A DNA stretch of 64,000 nucleotides from Salpingoeca rosetta (lineage: Eukaryota; Protista; Choanoflagellata). Numbering within the stretch: the stretch's first letter is position 1; each line of letters starts with the position of its first letter. This document shows, one piece after another, positions 20,224 to 33,377 of the stretch. Where the stretch lies: assembly GCA_033442325.1 (NCBI GenBank), contig JAWQFM010000002.1, positions 2,569,144 to 2,633,143 on the forward strand, given 5' to 3'. A model generated the notes under the pieces. That model was not told the DNA's origin. It did no database searches and was given only the letters and a program-made list of their open reading frames with translations. A program made the translations under genes and the position numbers.

Positions 20224-24286
<4,063 letters not shown>

Positions 24287-24518: not shown

Positions 24519-24629
24519 TGCGGATGCTATTGTCAAGAGAGGGAATGGGAAGAATGGGCGGATAAGAAAGAGAGGAAATGTAACGGGGAGTGACAAACGA
24601 CAGACACTCAAGCACAAGTGGCCTCTGGT

Positions 24630-24699
24630 TTACAGGTCTGTCTCAGCCTCCATCTTTGGTGTAAACTGCTTTGTCACACACGCGGCAGGAATCATGCCT

Positions 24700-24770
<71 letters not shown>

Positions 24771-27231
24771 TACTCATGGTGAGTGAAAACAAGGTGACAT
24801 CACTCAACCAAATTTACAAGCAGAAAAGCACAACAACAGCAGCAGACGCACCTCGCTGCCCCGTGATTTCATGCGTGCCAAGGAGAACGTTTGGGTTTCG
24901 CAACGTCTTCACGTCAATAAATACATCGCCCACCTGCACGCACGGATGTGTGCACGGGTGGCGGAAGGGGTTGCGAGAGAGAGAGGCATGACAGTGCACG
25001 TGAGTGTCAGTGTGGTAGGGGGCACACGCAGCGGCACAAAGGCATGGCTGAAGAACAAAACATGGCAGACGCACGAAAATACGCGCACACACACACATGC
25101 ACGATCAGCATTGCACACCTCAAAGGAGAGCTCCGACGGATCCTCTGCTTCGTTGGCCGTGACGGCCATGAATACCTCGCTCTCGCTGTCCGAACCCCAC
25201 GCCCGCTGTGCATATGCACACGCGCACGTGGCCAGAGAAGGAAGTGAGACACATCTGATGGACTTCACACGCTGGCACACACACACACACACATTCACAC
25301 ACACAGACACACAGACACAGACGCACCTTTGCGAGAGGGGATGGCTTGTTCATGCGTGTAGCATTTGGCGCCAACAACCGGCCGGGCACAGGCGATAAGG
25401 GCGACTCTCGCCCCTTCGCCTCCACTGCTGCAACCCCTGATGATGTTGACACTGTTGTAGTTGACGTTGAGAACTGCGTTGGCGGTGCCGGCGGGTGCGT
25501 GGCGGCAGCTGAGGATCCTCGACTGCTGCTGCCACTGCTCGTGTCACGGCTGTTCTTGTTCATAGTCCCTCTCGCGTGTGCTGCTGTTGCAGCTGTTGTT
25601 GCTGCTGTTGTTGTTGCATCATGCACGACGTGTTTCGCAAGATCGTCCTCGCCTTCCTCCTCCGTGCTCTCATCATGCACACCGGCAACAGTATTGAAGC
25701 TCAGAATCGCCGCCATGAGTTGACCTGAAGACAAGACACAGTCGCACAAGTACAGGTAACATGGAAGGGGCGGGGCCAGTGAGTGGTGAGCAAAGGGGGG
25801 GGGGGGGCTTGTTGCGTGCACACGAGGGAAACGAAGAGGTGTGTGTGTGCATATGTGTGCAAGTTCAAACGATTGATCGAGTAAGAGCACGCCCACAACC
25901 ATGAATACTCAACGCTTACCCTCTGGTGTGGACATGTCAGGCACAGGGCTTTGCTCCTCCTCCTCCTCATCGTCATCTCCTGCCTGTTGCCGCTGTTGTT
26001 GATGCTGTTGGTGTTGCTGTTGTTGTCTGATCGCGACCTCGGGAGCGCCCGCAATTTCGAGATATCCGCCGTCCGATGGGGCGCCGTGCTGTTGGTGGTG
26101 AGGGGTGGTGGTGGTGAGGGGTGAATGGAAAAAAGTGTTCAGTTCTGAGGGAAGACATTGAATCCAGACACCATACACACAATCAAACAAAACCACGCAC
26201 TACACACGCACGCACACACACCCGATACACACTCAATACACTCACACACACACGCACGCACAAACACACACACACACACACGCACGCACGCACAAACACA
26301 CGCACACACACACAAACACCACTACCCACTTTGCGGTCGACATGTGGGGAGGGCCTGACGTTGATGCGGCGTGGCGGCGGGCTGTCTGTAAACTCCACCT
26401 GCTGTGGCGCGGTGCTCTCCCCTGCAACTGTCCTCAGCACCTTTGGTGTGAACGAGATGGTGGCGGGGGCACGCGGGTTTGCTTCCGTCGCGTCCGTTCC
26501 CGATTTACCCTCGACAACAGCAGGCTGCAGAGCAATGGAGGTGGTGCGGGAATGAGCGAGTGTGTGTGAGTGTGTGAGTATGTGAGTGAGTGAGTGAGTA
26601 TGTGAGTGAGTGAGTGAGTGAGTGAGTATGCGAGTGAGCGAGTGATATTGTGTGTGTGTGTGATTGTGTGTGTGTGTGAGTGAGGGCAAGTGTGTGTGTG
26701 TGTCTCTTGAGTGTTGCGGAAGGTTTCAAGCAGCATACATGCAGCCACGGTCACGACACGGCCGCTGCACTGCACTTTCTTCACCTGTTTCGTGGATGCG
26801 ACGCGCCCACCAGCGGCAACATGATGACGGGCAGCACCATCATCGTTGTGGTCGTCGTCGTCGTCGTGATCGTCGTCGTTGAGGATAACACCACCTCGCC
26901 TGCTGGCACCAGCACCAACATCAGCGCTTGCAGCTGTGCTTGCGCTTGCAGTGCTGCTTCCTAGCGAGAGCGTGGTTGCTGTGGTGACGGTTGACAGGGA
27001 GGTGGTTGCGATGGGAGGGGCGCCTGACGACGAAGACGCGGACTGCGCATGCGTTGGATCGAACTGAAGCGCAGAGGAGATGGCCCCACGGTTCACACTC
27101 ATCCTGCTCTCGTCATTGTCATACGACATTGTGTGGCGCTGTGGGTGGTTGTGGTGGTTGTGGGGGTGGTGAGTGTGAGAGTGAGAGTGTGTGCACATGG
27201 TCGCAATTGTGCGCGCGAGTGTGTGTGTTTG

Positions 27232-27291
<60 letters not shown>

Positions 27292-29393
27292 CCTGTGTGG
27301 TGTGTTGGAAAGCACAATCCATTACACGTGTGGTCAAGCAATAACGCGCACCCACCTTGGAGAAGAGGGATGACAGCCTGTTTCTTGCTGTGCGCAGCTT
27401 CGATCGGTTCTTGCGCAACTGCACCCCACTCTCCTGCTCGCAAGGCATGTACATGGATGGTATTGAGGTGATGGGTGAACAGACAGGGAAGCATACCGCG
27501 AATACACGTTGTTGACGTGCACAACACAACAAAACTATGCAGGCACATGGTATTGTTCATCCATGGCCCAACATACACACACGCGCGCGAACACACACGC
27601 ACACATGCACACGCACGCCTTCGTCTTCGCTGGTAGTTTGTTCGCTGTCACTGCTCGACTTGACGTGCTGACTCCGGCGTGCAAACGACATTGAAACGGC
27701 CCGACGCGATCGCTGTTTCGCAGACTGGAGGTGATGCACACACACGTGCACACACAGACACACGTGCACGCAGAGACACACGTGCACGCAGAGACACACG
27801 TGCACGCAGAGACACACGTGCACGCAGAGACACACGCACAGCCGCACACACACACACACACACACACAAGCGCACAGACGCACAGAAGAATAAATGGTGA
27901 GATGCACGTGCCGGGGAGGGGGTGTGGAGTGAAAGTCTCAGCGAAAGTCAGGCAGTGCTGAATCAATCAAAGCCACACACACACACACACACACACACGA
28001 AAATTCACTCTCGCACGAAAATACACACACACGCGTGGGCTCTCTGCGTGTAATTGCACACGCGCAACACTCACGTTATCGCGCAGCACGACGCCCTCCT
28101 TGGTGGCCATGTCGGCGAGGGAGATGGACCCGTCCTGGTCCCAGCCAATGTCGTTGATGCTTGGCCGACGCTGGTCGCTTCTAACAAGAGTAGTTGTGGG
28201 GAGGGTGTTGAGTGGTGTGTGACGTGACGAGTGGCGTGATAACTGAAGAACTGGCAATCGTAGACCTCGCACATTTGTATCCACACAAGCGCACACATTC
28301 ACATGCACACATTCACATGATACCCACGTCCCCACCTTCGAACGCTGCCTGGCATGAGTTTGCGTGAGAGCGTGGAGATGCCACGAACTGTCGCCTTCCG
28401 AAGTGCGCGCGGCGCTTTGAGCGCAAGCGAGCGCTGACTCGAGCCCTGTGGCAACGCAGAGGGTGACGAGGTGTGGTGTGGTGTCAGTTGGTGGTGAATG
28501 GTGGGATGAACAGGCCACGGTGGCGTGAACAGGGCGGGTGTGATCAGAGGGGGCACTCACATCCATGTCGATGACTTGGATGCCTTGCTCCATGTATCGT
28601 GTGACGCGCGCCAGGTGCTCTCGCGCCTAATCAACGGCGTGTGGGTGGTGGGGCGCACATAACAATGAGGTGATCGTGGGGGTGGTCGTGAGTTTGCGCG
28701 TGACATCACACTTCAAGCAGGCACACACGTACACACACACATGTACACACACACACACACGTACACACACACACATGCACACACACGCACGCACAAACAC
28801 ACACGCGCGCACACACGCACAAACACACACACACACCTGCATTTCGCCAACTTTGTCCTCAAGCGCTTGTGAGAGGGAAATGTTCTGCTGGTAGTGCTCA
28901 GCAGCCTTGGGAAACCATCACAAGAACGCATACACATGTAGGCACACAAGTACATGCACAAGCGCGCAGTGAGCGAATGCAACAGGGCCATAAAGAGGGC
29001 TTCATCTCCACGAACACACACAAACACACACAAACACACACACACACAAACACACATACACACACACAACCTCTCTCTCTCTCTCTGCCTCTCCTCACAT
29101 ACTCCCTCGAATCAGTCACCTTGGTGTAGTTGCGCCTGTGTTCGTACATGGCTGCAATGTTTCCGTGTGCGCCCGCCAGCCCGCTCTTGTTGTCCAGCTC
29201 CTCCATGAGTTCCAAGTGCCGCGCATGGTGCTGCAATGCGTGCTCGTAGTCGCCAAACGCCTGGTATGCGCTGCCCAGGTTGCTGTGCGTGATGGCCTCG
29301 CTCTGCTTGTCCCCGAGCTTGCGAGCAACTTCAAGGTCCAGGTCGTAATATCGGATTGCCTGAGTGTGTTTGTGTGTTTGTGTGTGTGTGTGT

Positions 29394-29434
<41 letters not shown>

Positions 29435-29772
29435 AAAGGAAGGAAGCGCAAGAAGTCAAGGTCATTGCTGACATGCACACAGTGCAATTCAATTCGAAAA
29501 TGACACGTGCAAACACCATGATGCTGTTGATGTGAACACATGTTATCCGTGACCACCACCAATGAAGCCATGTGCTACAGCTCACCTCCTGGAATCGTCC
29601 CTGCATGCGGCGAACGTTTCCAAGACTGTTGTACGCGCGCGACTGTCCAGCTAAGTCGTTGTACTGCAGCAGGGGTTGGGATGGCGGTGATCGTGGTGAA
29701 TAAAGAAGCAGGAAAAAGAAAATGAGCGAGCCAACACAACACGTGCACGCAGACACAGCGCACATGCACGCA

Positions 29773-29839
<67 letters not shown>

Positions 29840-30441
29840 GCACGCACGCACGCACGCACGCACGTGCACACAGCGAGTGAGACGGACAACCACAGGCCAT
29901 TTCCTTGCCTCAGTCTCACCTTGATTGCAATGTTGAGTTTCTTCTCATACAATCTAAACGCAGACTCAAGGTCCTTGACACGTTCATACGTGCTGGCTAA
30001 ATGCCCACACGCACGCCCCAACCCGCTAGGATCCAGCTCTTTGTTCTTCCTCCCAAACGTCTGTGACAACACGTGGACGAAAAAAAAACGGTCAGCCAGC
30101 AATGTGCAGAACATCACACATGCATCAGACAAGAGACTGGCACAAATAAGCGCGCTCACACAAGCATGCATTGAACACTGAAATCAATGCACATAAACAC
30201 AATCACCAACACCACACAACGCACATGTATACACGCACGTACATGTACACACACAACACACACACACACACACACACACAAACAAACATACACACAATCA
30301 CGTGCATGAGACCTTGCGATAGTATTTGACGGCGCTGTTGAAGGCGTTGTGGTCCCTCGGCTCTGTGAGCCGCCCCATGCTCTCCTCAAGCCCGCACGCA
30401 TTGCCAAGCATGTGGTACACGTTGCCTGCAGCGAAAGGAGA

Positions 30442-30510
<69 letters not shown>

Positions 30511-30893
30511 GGGGAGGGGTGTAGATGGTTGGTGATGACAGGATGTTGCGGCACAGGAAGAAGGAAAGACACAATCACACACGCACATGCGCGCGTATGC
30601 ATGCACGCACGAATAGACACACACACACACGCCACTGCTGCGCGTACCGATGCTGTCGAGGGCGCGTGCCTGTGCCGCCGAGTCACCGCAGGACTTGGCA
30701 ATGCGAAGACTACGCTGGTAGCACTCCGACGCCTTCTCAAGATCGCCCATCCCTTTGTACGTGTTGCCCAGGTGCGCATACGTCTTTGCCTGGTGGTGGT
30801 GGTGGTGGTGGTGGCAGTGCACGGGATCGTGTGAACGGTTGCGAGCACAGCAACATGTACACAACAAACTGCAATTGTTTCAGGCATAGAGAG

Positions 30894-30958
<65 letters not shown>

Positions 30959-31688
30959 TAGAGAGACAGATAGAGAGACAGACAGAGAGGTACCTGCACA
31001 CATGCGCACGCACGCACCCCCCCCCCCACAAGCGTGAATACCCACACGCATACACGGCCAGATGCGCACGCACCTCGCTGCGTTTGTTTGCCATGTTTCT
31101 GTGGCTGAGGAGCTCCTGCTTGTGGAAGCGCAGGGCCTGGCGATAATCCTTTTTCGCATAGTAGCACAGCGCCAGCTGCACCAGGGCATTGGCCCAAGCA
31201 AGTGCACGTGTGATGGGAGATGAGCTGGTGAGATCAAGTGCAAAGTATGGAGGGAGGAAGGGTGGAGGGCACACATGCACACACGCAGAGGAAGAGGAAC
31301 AGAGATACCGCATACACAGAGACACAGATACACAGATACACATGCACATTCACTCAGATTCACACACACACATGCATACACAGAGACGCATGCGCTACCT
31401 GTGAGACTGCTGCGGCAAAGGCCTCCTCCATGTCGGTGCCCATCTTGATGGCGCGGAGAAACAGCTGAATGGCACGGTCGTAGTCGCCCTTTGCAGCCTG
31501 CTCCTCGCCGGCAATGGCATATGTCATGAACGTGGGCTTGCGGCGCTTGGATTTGGACCGCTTCGACGCGCGGCTGCGGCGCCCACTTGATTGCCCGTGG
31601 CCATCGTCCCCTTTGCTTTCTCCATCATCACTCTTGTCTTTCGGTGATGACACGGCATCCGTTGGCGACAGTGTGTTTGACACATTAG

Positions 31689-31719
<31 letters not shown>

Positions 31720-32157
31720 CTGTTGCTGCTGCTGCTGCTCGCGGCGTGGTGTGGCGCCGTCGGCAACCCGAACCACGACCTCGCTTGTGGCGCTGCTGGC
31801 TGCGTGAGCTGTGCCATTTGGTGTGCGCGTTGTGTCGCTTGCAGACCCTTCACCTCTCGCTGAGGTGGATGCGGGTGGCGTCGCTGTTGTCGTTATCGCT
31901 GGTGCTGAGGATGAGAAAGCGTTTGGGGGCGGCACCCACGACGCATCAAAGGGGTTAGTGCTTGTCTTGGAAGCTGACTGTTGTTGCTGTGGCTTCATTG
32001 ACGTTGGTGGTGGTGCTGGGGATGATGCTGACGTTGAGTGGGCGTCTTGATGCTGCGGTTGTGATTGTTGTGAAGCACGTGCCGCTTCTGATGTGCTGTT
32101 GTTGTTCTTGTTGTTCTTGTTGGCTTCTGTTGCCTCGTGTGGATCACTCGGGTCCAT
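24630..32157 (-). CDS. Pins/LGN/AGS3 (GPSM1/2)-type 8-TPR protein with a long disordered region and a C-terminal degenerate SH3; no GoLoco motifs seen
   Basis: TPR array colinear with LGN: [28 protein letters not shown]...AVSQLALCYY...HLGNTYK...[12 protein letters not shown](insert)[10 protein letters not shown]...RAYNSLGN...HSNLGSAY...DKVGEMQAREHL. C-terminal [19 protein letters not shown]|VGDVF...[11 protein letters not shown]|GMIPAACV. Stop at 24630-24632. Confidence 0.85.
27761..27832. repeat. 18-bp tandem repeat (CACGTGCACGCAGAGACA)x4 in an intron
   Basis: Four exact copies, preceded by one degenerate copy. Confidence 0.9.
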
Positions 32158-32662: not shown

Positions 32663-33377
32663 ATGGCGGACGAAGAGCCAGCCTCCTTGTCGTCCTCGGC
32701 GTCCACGGCCACGGCCAACACCACCACGTCCAGCAACAGCAGCGGCAGCGATGAAGCGCATGCAAGTGCACCACCAGCACACGCCCTCGATCCTGTGATG
32801 GACGTGGATGATCACGGGGAGAACGACGACGACGACGTCGATGTCGATGATGTTGACGACGATGAGCCACAGCAAGATGCAGGTGACAACACACCAAGTG
32901 GTCGCGGTGCTTCGCCCAAGGACGACGACGATGATCTCCTGGACATTGACGACGACCCCAACGACAACGCCGTCATTCATGAAAGCGACGCGGATGACGG
33001 GTTTGTGGAGGTGCGCCACGGGGGCGACAGAACAGGCCAGCGGCGCGGCGGCTCATCGCAGTCCCCGTCCCCTGTTGATGCATCGCCACGCGCCGTGTCA
33101 CCCGAGACTGCACCCGGCCACACCCAGCTCTCCACGTCGGAGGCGGTGAAGCGTGTGTCGGGCGCTGCCGTCAAATACGTCACATCCTGGCAGGAGTTTG
33201 TGGTGGATGTGGTGTCCGAGATGAAGAATCCAACGCGCCCCATCACACAGGAGGTCTGCGCATATTTCACACCCATGTCGCAGTGTTGGGAATGCGAGAT
33301 GCGTGTGGCAGCCGCTGATAAGCCGTCAAGCCCCGAGTGCTGTTGGCTGTGAATGCTGCACATGACACACATGTCAT

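Follow-up and report, generated by a model that had tools for sequence, protein, structure and literature searches.

A predicted scaffold gene of Salpingoeca rosetta with LGN/Pins-like TPRs, no GoLoco motif and a putative atypical SH3 domain

Gene content of the locus

We analysed a window of 64,000 nucleotides from the choanoflagellate Salpingoeca rosetta (assembly GCA_033442325.1, contig JAWQFM010000002.1, positions 2,569,144 to 2,633,143 of the forward strand), which is part of contig C2 of the genome searched here (55.4 Mb, 68 contigs). On its minus strand lies what appears to be an undescribed scaffold gene, hereafter the window gene. A preliminary description, made from the letters of the sequence, had placed here a scaffold with tetratricopeptide repeats (TPRs) of the Pins/LGN type and a degenerate SH3 in place of GoLoco motifs. 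Its observation is confirmed by the present analysis and its interpretation is supported in part. All the protein strings that it quoted were recovered after GT-AG splicing of the minus strand: the TPR1-2 junction in exons 1 and 2, the TPR4 helix and insertion in exons 3 and 4, the cap in exons 8 and 9 and the SH3 pattern in the last three exons. The gene begins upstream of the start proposed there (31530), at an ATG at 32157, and ends at a TAA stop codon at 24630 (Table 1).

The first nine GT-AG exons, from the ATG down to position 28561, are defined by open frames and canonical splice sites and encode 570 residues: a disordered head of 205 residues, eight TPRs of about 40 residues each and a capping helix, the repeats and the cap occupying residues ~208 to 570 of the spliced model. 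The head closes, just before TPR1, with a polybasic patch, [14 protein letters not shown], and the tail of exon 1 is conserved in four loci of other assemblies (L018-L021, see below). The full model comprises 20 exons and 1165 residues, the TPR exons and the SH3 exons being joined in frame by an ab initio exon chain. The predicted introns are 115-350 nt long and rich in (CA)n; imperfect CA-rich repeats lie at 27734-27776, in the intron before predicted exon 12. On balance, and with some reserve, we favour the reading that the minus strand from 32157 to 24630 is one gene of ~20 exons encoding a scaffold of ~1165 residues, made of the head, LGN/Pins-like TPRs, a linker and an atypical SH3.

Likeness of the TPR array to Pins and LGN

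Taken singly, the TPR exons match the Pfam families TPR_1, TPR_7, TPR_8 and TPR_12. The eight LGN-type repeats claimed earlier were all found, followed by the cap, and Pins and LGN proved to be the best natural matches among solved structures (PDB) for exons 3 and 7, out of five TPR exons that were compared. Exon 7 (80 residues) scored 111 bits with Pins and 108 bits with LGN, the next natural match being TONSL with 38 bits; the scores of exon 3 (47 residues) were similar and are given in Table 1. As controls, the TPR of the genome nearest to exon 7 (contig C35, 71 residues) reached 55 bits with Pins/LGN, with kinesin light chain close behind, and an exon of the true S. rosetta Pins (39 residues) reached 133 bits. 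The Pins/LGN scores of exons 3 and 7 are thus about twice that of the generic S. rosetta control, and kinesin light chain is not among their matches. Since they lie between the two controls, the TPR array is, as far as these comparisons tell, LGN-like beyond the generic level and less so than that of a Pins orthologue. Expressed per residue, the similarity to Pins/LGN is ~1.4-2.4 bits for the window gene versus 3.4 bits for the true orthologue.

Colinearity with LGN, also claimed earlier, was observed for a part of the array. TPR1 and TPR2 (exons 1 and 2) fall on TPR1 and TPR2 of LGN, and the best stretch for exon 5 is TPR5 of Pins but TPR8 of LGN. In contrast, exon 3 is out of register, its best stretch being TPR6, and that of exon 7 is shifted by one repeat. 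Exon 4 alone, which carries the TPR4 insertion, gave no PDB match, meaning that the sequence of this insertion is not detectably LGN-like.

Several results weigh against a special relation to Pins. Designed consensus TPRs scored above Pins in every PDB search. When TPR1 or exon 7 was used to search the genome, other S. rosetta TPR genes were retrieved before the canonical Pins gene on contig C10 (see below), to which the similarity of the window gene is low and not colinear. Exon 7 shares 41-49% identity with other TPR genes of S. rosetta versus ~36% with Pins over the best stretch, and the whole array is 26-28% identical to many S. rosetta TPR genes. The look-alikes of exon 7 in an atlas search are generic TPR clusters only, the top score going to a rapsyn-named cluster. 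Together with the mixed register and the unmatched insertion, these data would suit a single gene to which the label 'Pins/LGN-type' is wrongly applied, its repeats belonging to the generic 40-residue TPR_12/TPR_7 class of rapsyn, TTC28, TONSL, kinesin light chain and the S. rosetta TPR genes. Such a gene would not be expected to score twice as high as the generic control with Pins/LGN while missing kinesin light chain, to hold exactly eight repeats and a cap, or to place TPR1 and TPR2 on their LGN counterparts; we consider this alternative rather unlikely, though it deserves to be taken seriously, and retain an LGN-like array as the preferred reading.

As a separate observation, S. rosetta has dozens of long, apparently intronless TPR_12-type frames (500-1100 residues, one of 3106 residues) on contigs C25, C29, C20, C35, C33 and others. 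Their repeats are 30-49% identical to exon 7, and the whole looks like a large lineage expansion.

The canonical Pins gene and the GoLoco motif

The gene PTSG_04091 has been named S. rosetta Pins as the reciprocal best hit of fly Pins, and the peptide of its linker has been published (Anderson et al. 2016, PMC4718807). We found this peptide encoded on contig C10 near 1,059,300 and not in the window. The window gene is therefore a second gene with LGN-like TPRs, devoid of GoLoco motifs, and not the published Pins orthologue. On C10, LGN-like TPR exons lie upstream of the linker peptide, and three GoLoco helices with two [DE]DQR halves lie downstream of it; the canonical gene thus has two complete GoLoco motifs and a partial one, and both complete motifs are split by an intron between the helix and [DE]DQR. 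The third helix (MSFFEML...) runs into a stop codon, and to read through TPR1 of this gene a frame change or a very short intron near 1,061,960 appears to be required. Just upstream of it, on the same strand, is an open frame of 1094 residues with an SH2-like end.

By the published reciprocal best hit, the counterpart of animal Pins is PTSG_04091 and not the window gene. The preliminary description had called the latter a Pins paralogue. This label fits in that the canonical TPR and GoLoco gene is distinct and located elsewhere, on C10; as the similarity to C10 Pins is low and not colinear, and as other TPR genes are found first by TPR1 and exon 7, it is a reasonable label rather than a demonstrated relationship.

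The absence of GoLoco motifs, which had also been claimed, was borne out. When the whole genome was searched in six frames with the Pfam GoLoco model (PF02188), a half-motif was found on C10 (21 bits) and a full motif on contig C5 (41 bits), with no match in the window gene even at E<=10. A regular-expression search in all frames of the window gene gave only SDQR at the joint of exons 10 and 11, with no GoLoco helix before it. This joint (KLMPGSVR at the end of exon 10, RSDQRR at the start of exon 11) could be imagined as a cryptic, decayed GoLoco, intron-split like those of C10, that might still touch G-alpha: its R-x-D-Q-R follows a partly amphipathic stretch, the position of the intron resembles that in the C10 motifs, and exon 10 is conserved in L018. 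However, only about 5 of 19 positions fit in a hand alignment (Arg, Asp, Gln and Arg being kept), Pro-Gly falls within the would-be helix, and neither the FF/LL pair nor the central Gln is present. Moreover, the DQR half escaped the Pfam model at E<=10, whereas the half-motif of C10 was detected. We regard a cryptic GoLoco as highly improbable.

The full motif on C5 (268028-268090, minus strand; L001) is the only GoLoco of the genome above the Pfam cut-off. It stands at the very start of an open frame, ahead of a long tail of low complexity, and the 10 kb upstream showed no TPR-like frames.

An SH3-like domain at the C-terminus

Canonical splice sites join the last three exons in phase; together these would encode an SH3-like domain, residues ~1098-1151. 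We scored the joined model with a home-made profile hidden Markov model built from 22 complete S. rosetta SH3 domains, taken from a genome SH3 scan. It reached 28.5 bits (E value 2.7e-7), and the alignment was ungapped across both exon joints. For comparison, the best of 5000 shuffles scored 9.0 bits and the best of ~1000 open reading frame pieces of the window 5.4 bits.

The profile alignment shows that the domain has retained the ELSF..GD core, the Gly, the Ile-Pro and the acidic RT loop. Missing are both Tyr residues of ALYDY, the Trp and, behind the Pro, Asn-Tyr; PxNY has become PAAC, and the two other substitutions are listed in Table 1. The earlier claim of an SH3 pattern without YDY, Trp and PxNY thus holds for the aromatic residues and the Asn, but not for the Pro of PxNY, which is still present. 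We found no aromatic PxxP-binding platform: the Pro and the acidic RT loop are the only features of the ligand site that remain. We thus take the last three exons to encode a putative degenerate, or atypical, SH3. The protein ends with -EAETDL (24630-24650, minus strand), of which -ETDL resembles a class I PDZ ligand in form, a feature that was spotted post hoc. The S. rosetta genome gives more than 100 PDZ matches.

Relatives in other assemblies

A protein search with exon 1 returned first-exon fragments from three other assemblies (P0001, P0032 and P0035) and bacterial TPR proteins; the protein of S. rosetta itself was not returned. The contigs of the fragments are 1.4-4.9 kb long and all end before the SH3. 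In L018 and L019, which come from two sequencing runs of another eukaryote, separate blocks match exons 1-7, 9 and 10 in the same order with 39-67% identity; exon 10 in particular is 53% identical to L018 over 32 residues (tblastx, E 2e-8). At least one other eukaryote thus appears to have the gene with the same exon layout in the region of exons 1-10. Two metagenome contigs carry exons 1-2, with 80% identity for exon 2 in L020. A metagenome search with an alignment of exon 7 gave one unrelated long TPR gene (L054). Homologue searches with exon 11, with the exon 14 frame and with the exon 2 frame found nothing, a result of little weight as these searches are limited by query length and word sharing.

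One gene or two

From the sequence, the TPR exons and the SH3 exons probably belong to one gene. The locus is bounded by two plus-strand neighbours, a convergent gene ending at 24286 and a divergent one starting at 32663, and the region between them holds one or two minus-strand genes. Exons 10 and 11 join in phase. The chain from exon 11 to the SH3 was built by dynamic programming with codon log-odds trained on the sure exons. In the best chain, six exons are flanked by good splice sites and separated by introns of 121-350 nt; the same six intervals were top-scoring without the phase rule and are phase-compatible, with a score sum of 334 versus 161 on the opposite strand. In addition, of the words sampled from 24600-30500, a fraction of 0.36-0.38 is present in eight probably RNA-derived runs, which is near the share of ~0.34 expected for 31-letter words lying wholly within the exons of the model.

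Other points speak against this reading. The exon joints are predicted, and a shared mRNA for TPRs and SH3 rests on the ab initio chain. Exons 12-17 are themselves ab initio and of low complexity, and for exons 16 and 17 the choice of frame is ambiguous. The SH3 call depends on the home-made profile and on the joined exon model: single SH3 or linker exons had no Pfam match, and the SH3 exons were absent from a six-frame SH3_1 scan. Finally, as query length bounded the searches, they yielded no relative that carries the complete architecture (the word search covered 0.55-1.75x the query length; the longest stop-free reference at the locus has 397 residues).

The locus might then hold two genes, a TPR-only protein ending soon after exons 11-13 and a downstream disordered protein with a C-terminal SH3, the combined architecture being a joining artefact. 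What would be left is a TPR protein of an ordinary kind, next to a small protein with an SH3. Besides the predicted joints and the ambiguous frames, exon 14 contains in-frame ATG codons that could serve this alternative; no locus protein of 162-516 or 218-695 residues surfaced in the protein collection, which says little. On the other hand, non-coding gaps on the strand measure 350 nt at most, leaving no room for the 3' untranslated region of a first gene and the promoter and 5' untranslated region of a second one, and from exon 11 onwards the best exon-like intervals connect in phase up to the SH3. Two genes are, in our judgement, unlikely, and we proceed with the single scaffold gene.

Table 1. 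Predicted exons of the window gene (positions of the window) and location of the canonical S. rosetta Pins gene
Feature	Residues and content	Position	Strand	Evidence
Exon 1	1-253; ATG, Ser/Thr/Gln-rich disordered head (205 residues), polybasic patch, TPR1	31399..32157	-	Open frame, GT donor, weak Pfam TPR matches
Exon 2	254-287; TPR2	31074..31175	-	Splice sites; best PDB stretch on TPR2 of LGN and Pins; 80% identical in L020
Exon 3	288-335; TPR3 and start of TPR4	30648..30789	-	Pfam TPR_1 4.7e-9; Pins 114 bits, LGN 110 bits
Exon 4	335-372; TPR4 helix A, insertion of ~18 residues, helix B	30313..30425	-	Splice sites; conserved in L018
Exon 5	373-419; TPR5	29920..30060	-	Splice model, Pfam, PDB comparison; 62% identical in L018
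Exon 6	420-445; TPR6 helix A	29586..29663	-	Splice model, Pfam, L018 match
Exon 7	446-525; TPR6 helix B, TPR7, TPR8 helix A	29120..29359	-	Pfam TPR_7, TPR_12 ~1e-9; 63% identical in L018
Exon 8	526-548; TPR8 helix B	28837..28905	-	Splice sites
Exon 9	549-570; capping helix	28561..28626	-	Splice sites; 46% identical in L018
Exon 10	571-607; basic linker, net charge +10, motif [16 protein letters not shown]	28336..28445	-	Splice sites; tblastx to L018
Exon 11	607-642; contains RRPSINDI	28075..28180	-	Phase matches exon 10; strong GTGAGT donor
Exon 12	643-678; basic Ser-rich linker, ab initio	27617..27724	-	Best exon chain and coding score
Exon 13	679-705; basic linker, net charge +7, ab initio	27356..27436	-	GC content at third codon positions 0.78 in used frame vs 0.42, 0.50
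Exon 14	706-833; Ser/Thr/Ala-rich, acidic His/Asp run, ab initio	26755..27138	-	Score 75 in frame vs -4, -2
Exon 15	834-898; linker, ab initio	26330..26524	-	Exon chain and coding score
Exon 16	899-955; ab initio, frame uncertain	25920..26088	-	Two frames near-equal, 59.6 and 56.1
Exon 17	955-1087; ab initio, frame uncertain	25327..25724	-	76.1 vs 70.9
Exon 18	1088-1116; putative SH3 strand a and acidic RT loop (AVTAN replaces ALYDY)	25119..25205	-	Joined-model profile alignment
Exon 19	1117-1144; putative SH3 core (VLLG replaces WW.G)	24852..24933	-	Joined-model profile alignment
Exon 20	1144-1165 and TAA; putative SH3 end (MIPAACV), tail ending -ETDL	24630..24697	-	Joined-model profile alignment
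Canonical S. rosetta Pins (PTSG_04091)		contig C10, ~1,058,040-1,062,010	-	Published linker peptide; loci L002, L052, L053

The linker and possible anchoring of the protein

Between the cap and the SH3 lies a predicted linker of ~520 residues, which is disordered; its first part is strongly basic, Ser/Thr-rich and conserved in another species. A motif of the Aurora-A type has been described as [RKN]-R-x-S-hydrophobic (PMC8576264), and only two sites in the whole window protein fit it, Ser614 and Thr708 (such motifs are short, and these were picked post hoc). The first, RRPSI in exon 11, stands 44 residues after the TPR cap, and the second, KRHTM, spans a predicted exon joint. We take the serine of LGN/Pins that is an Aurora-A and Dlg-binding site to lie at about the same distance after the cap as Ser614. 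The form of the LGN site, presumably RRHS-M-E-N-M, can be likened to the RRPS-I-N-D-I of the window protein.

If the TPRs fold as those of LGN do, the concave groove of their superhelix would hold an extended partner peptide, as LGN does with NuMA or Inscuteable. Anchoring would not come from GoLoco motifs and G-alpha-i as in Pins, and several other parts of the protein are candidates for it. The polybasic patch before TPR1, conserved in relatives, could be one; the basic, Ser/Thr-rich exons 10-13 could be another, the head or the linker binding acidic lipids in a manner switched by phosphorylation. The C-terminal PDZ-type tail might also serve. As for the atypical SH3, it would make a non-canonical contact or fold back on its own protein, since the PxxP-binding aromatic residues are lost. 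The window protein may have a role in oriented division or cortical anchoring, a proposal that is purely speculative.

The GK domain of S. rosetta Dlg was reported to bind the linker of fly Pins and not that of PTSG_04091 (Anderson et al. 2016). Were the window protein, rather than PTSG_04091, the partner of choanoflagellate Discs large, with its RRPSINDI site and -ETDL tail, the puzzle of a Dlg GK that ignores the linker of its own Pins would be explained, and the link between TPRs and Dlg would predate animals and have sat in a paralogue without GoLoco motifs. We hold this to be improbable, a long shot worth stating. On contig C17 (~457,400-460,300, plus strand; L027) lies a Dlg-like MAGUK gene with three PDZ domains and an SH3 in one exon, within a dense cluster of further PDZ matches (453-468 kb). 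Judged by eye, the class I histidine expected where helix B begins seems to be missing from all three of its PDZ domains. In the S. rosetta MAGUKs, introns interrupt the GK domains.

Comparison with known scaffolds

With Pins, LGN (GPSM2), AGS3 (GPSM1) and PTSG_04091 the window protein shares eight N-terminal TPRs of ~40 residues with a cap, then a long disordered linker; its basic RRxS-hydrophobic site ~44 residues past the cap may be a further parallel. It differs from them by its 205-residue disordered head and by the predicted SH3 and -ETDL at the C-terminus in place of GoLoco motifs. The same domain order, N-terminal TPRs and an SH3 at the very C-terminus, is found in the adaptors p67phox (NCF2) and NOXA1. 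These, however, have four Rac-binding TPRs, PB1 and canonical SH3 domains, and no sequence relation to them surfaced in our searches. SH3TC1 and SH3TC2 also combine SH3 and TPRs in one scaffold but, by their description, in the reverse order, SH3 first and TPRs last. Rapsyn, TTC28 and TONSL join the same 40-residue TPR class to another effector module, and two of them came up above, TONSL as the next natural PDB match after LGN and rapsyn in the name of the top atlas cluster; compared by description, their modules are RING, CHAT or ankyrin/LRR and not SH3.

Work on oriented division has treated PTSG_04091 as the sole Pins-like gene of S. rosetta. Were it joined by a second LGN-like scaffold, lacking GoLoco motifs but ending in an SH3 and a PDZ-type tail, the closest relatives of animals would offer a further candidate for TPR-based cortical or spindle complexes, and the LGN-type TPR module would have been paired with different anchoring modules already before animals arose. 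The genetic tractability of S. rosetta makes the idea open to experiment.

Neighbouring genes

The convergent neighbour (21378-24286, plus strand) ends 344 nt from the stop codon of the window gene, and its frames resemble, by eye, a diphthamide-synthesis ATP-binding domain followed by a RidA/YjgF-like domain. The divergent neighbour (32663-33352, plus strand) starts ~500 nt from the ATG of the window gene; its first exon is rich in Asp and very acidic. A bidirectional promoter region is probably common to these two genes.

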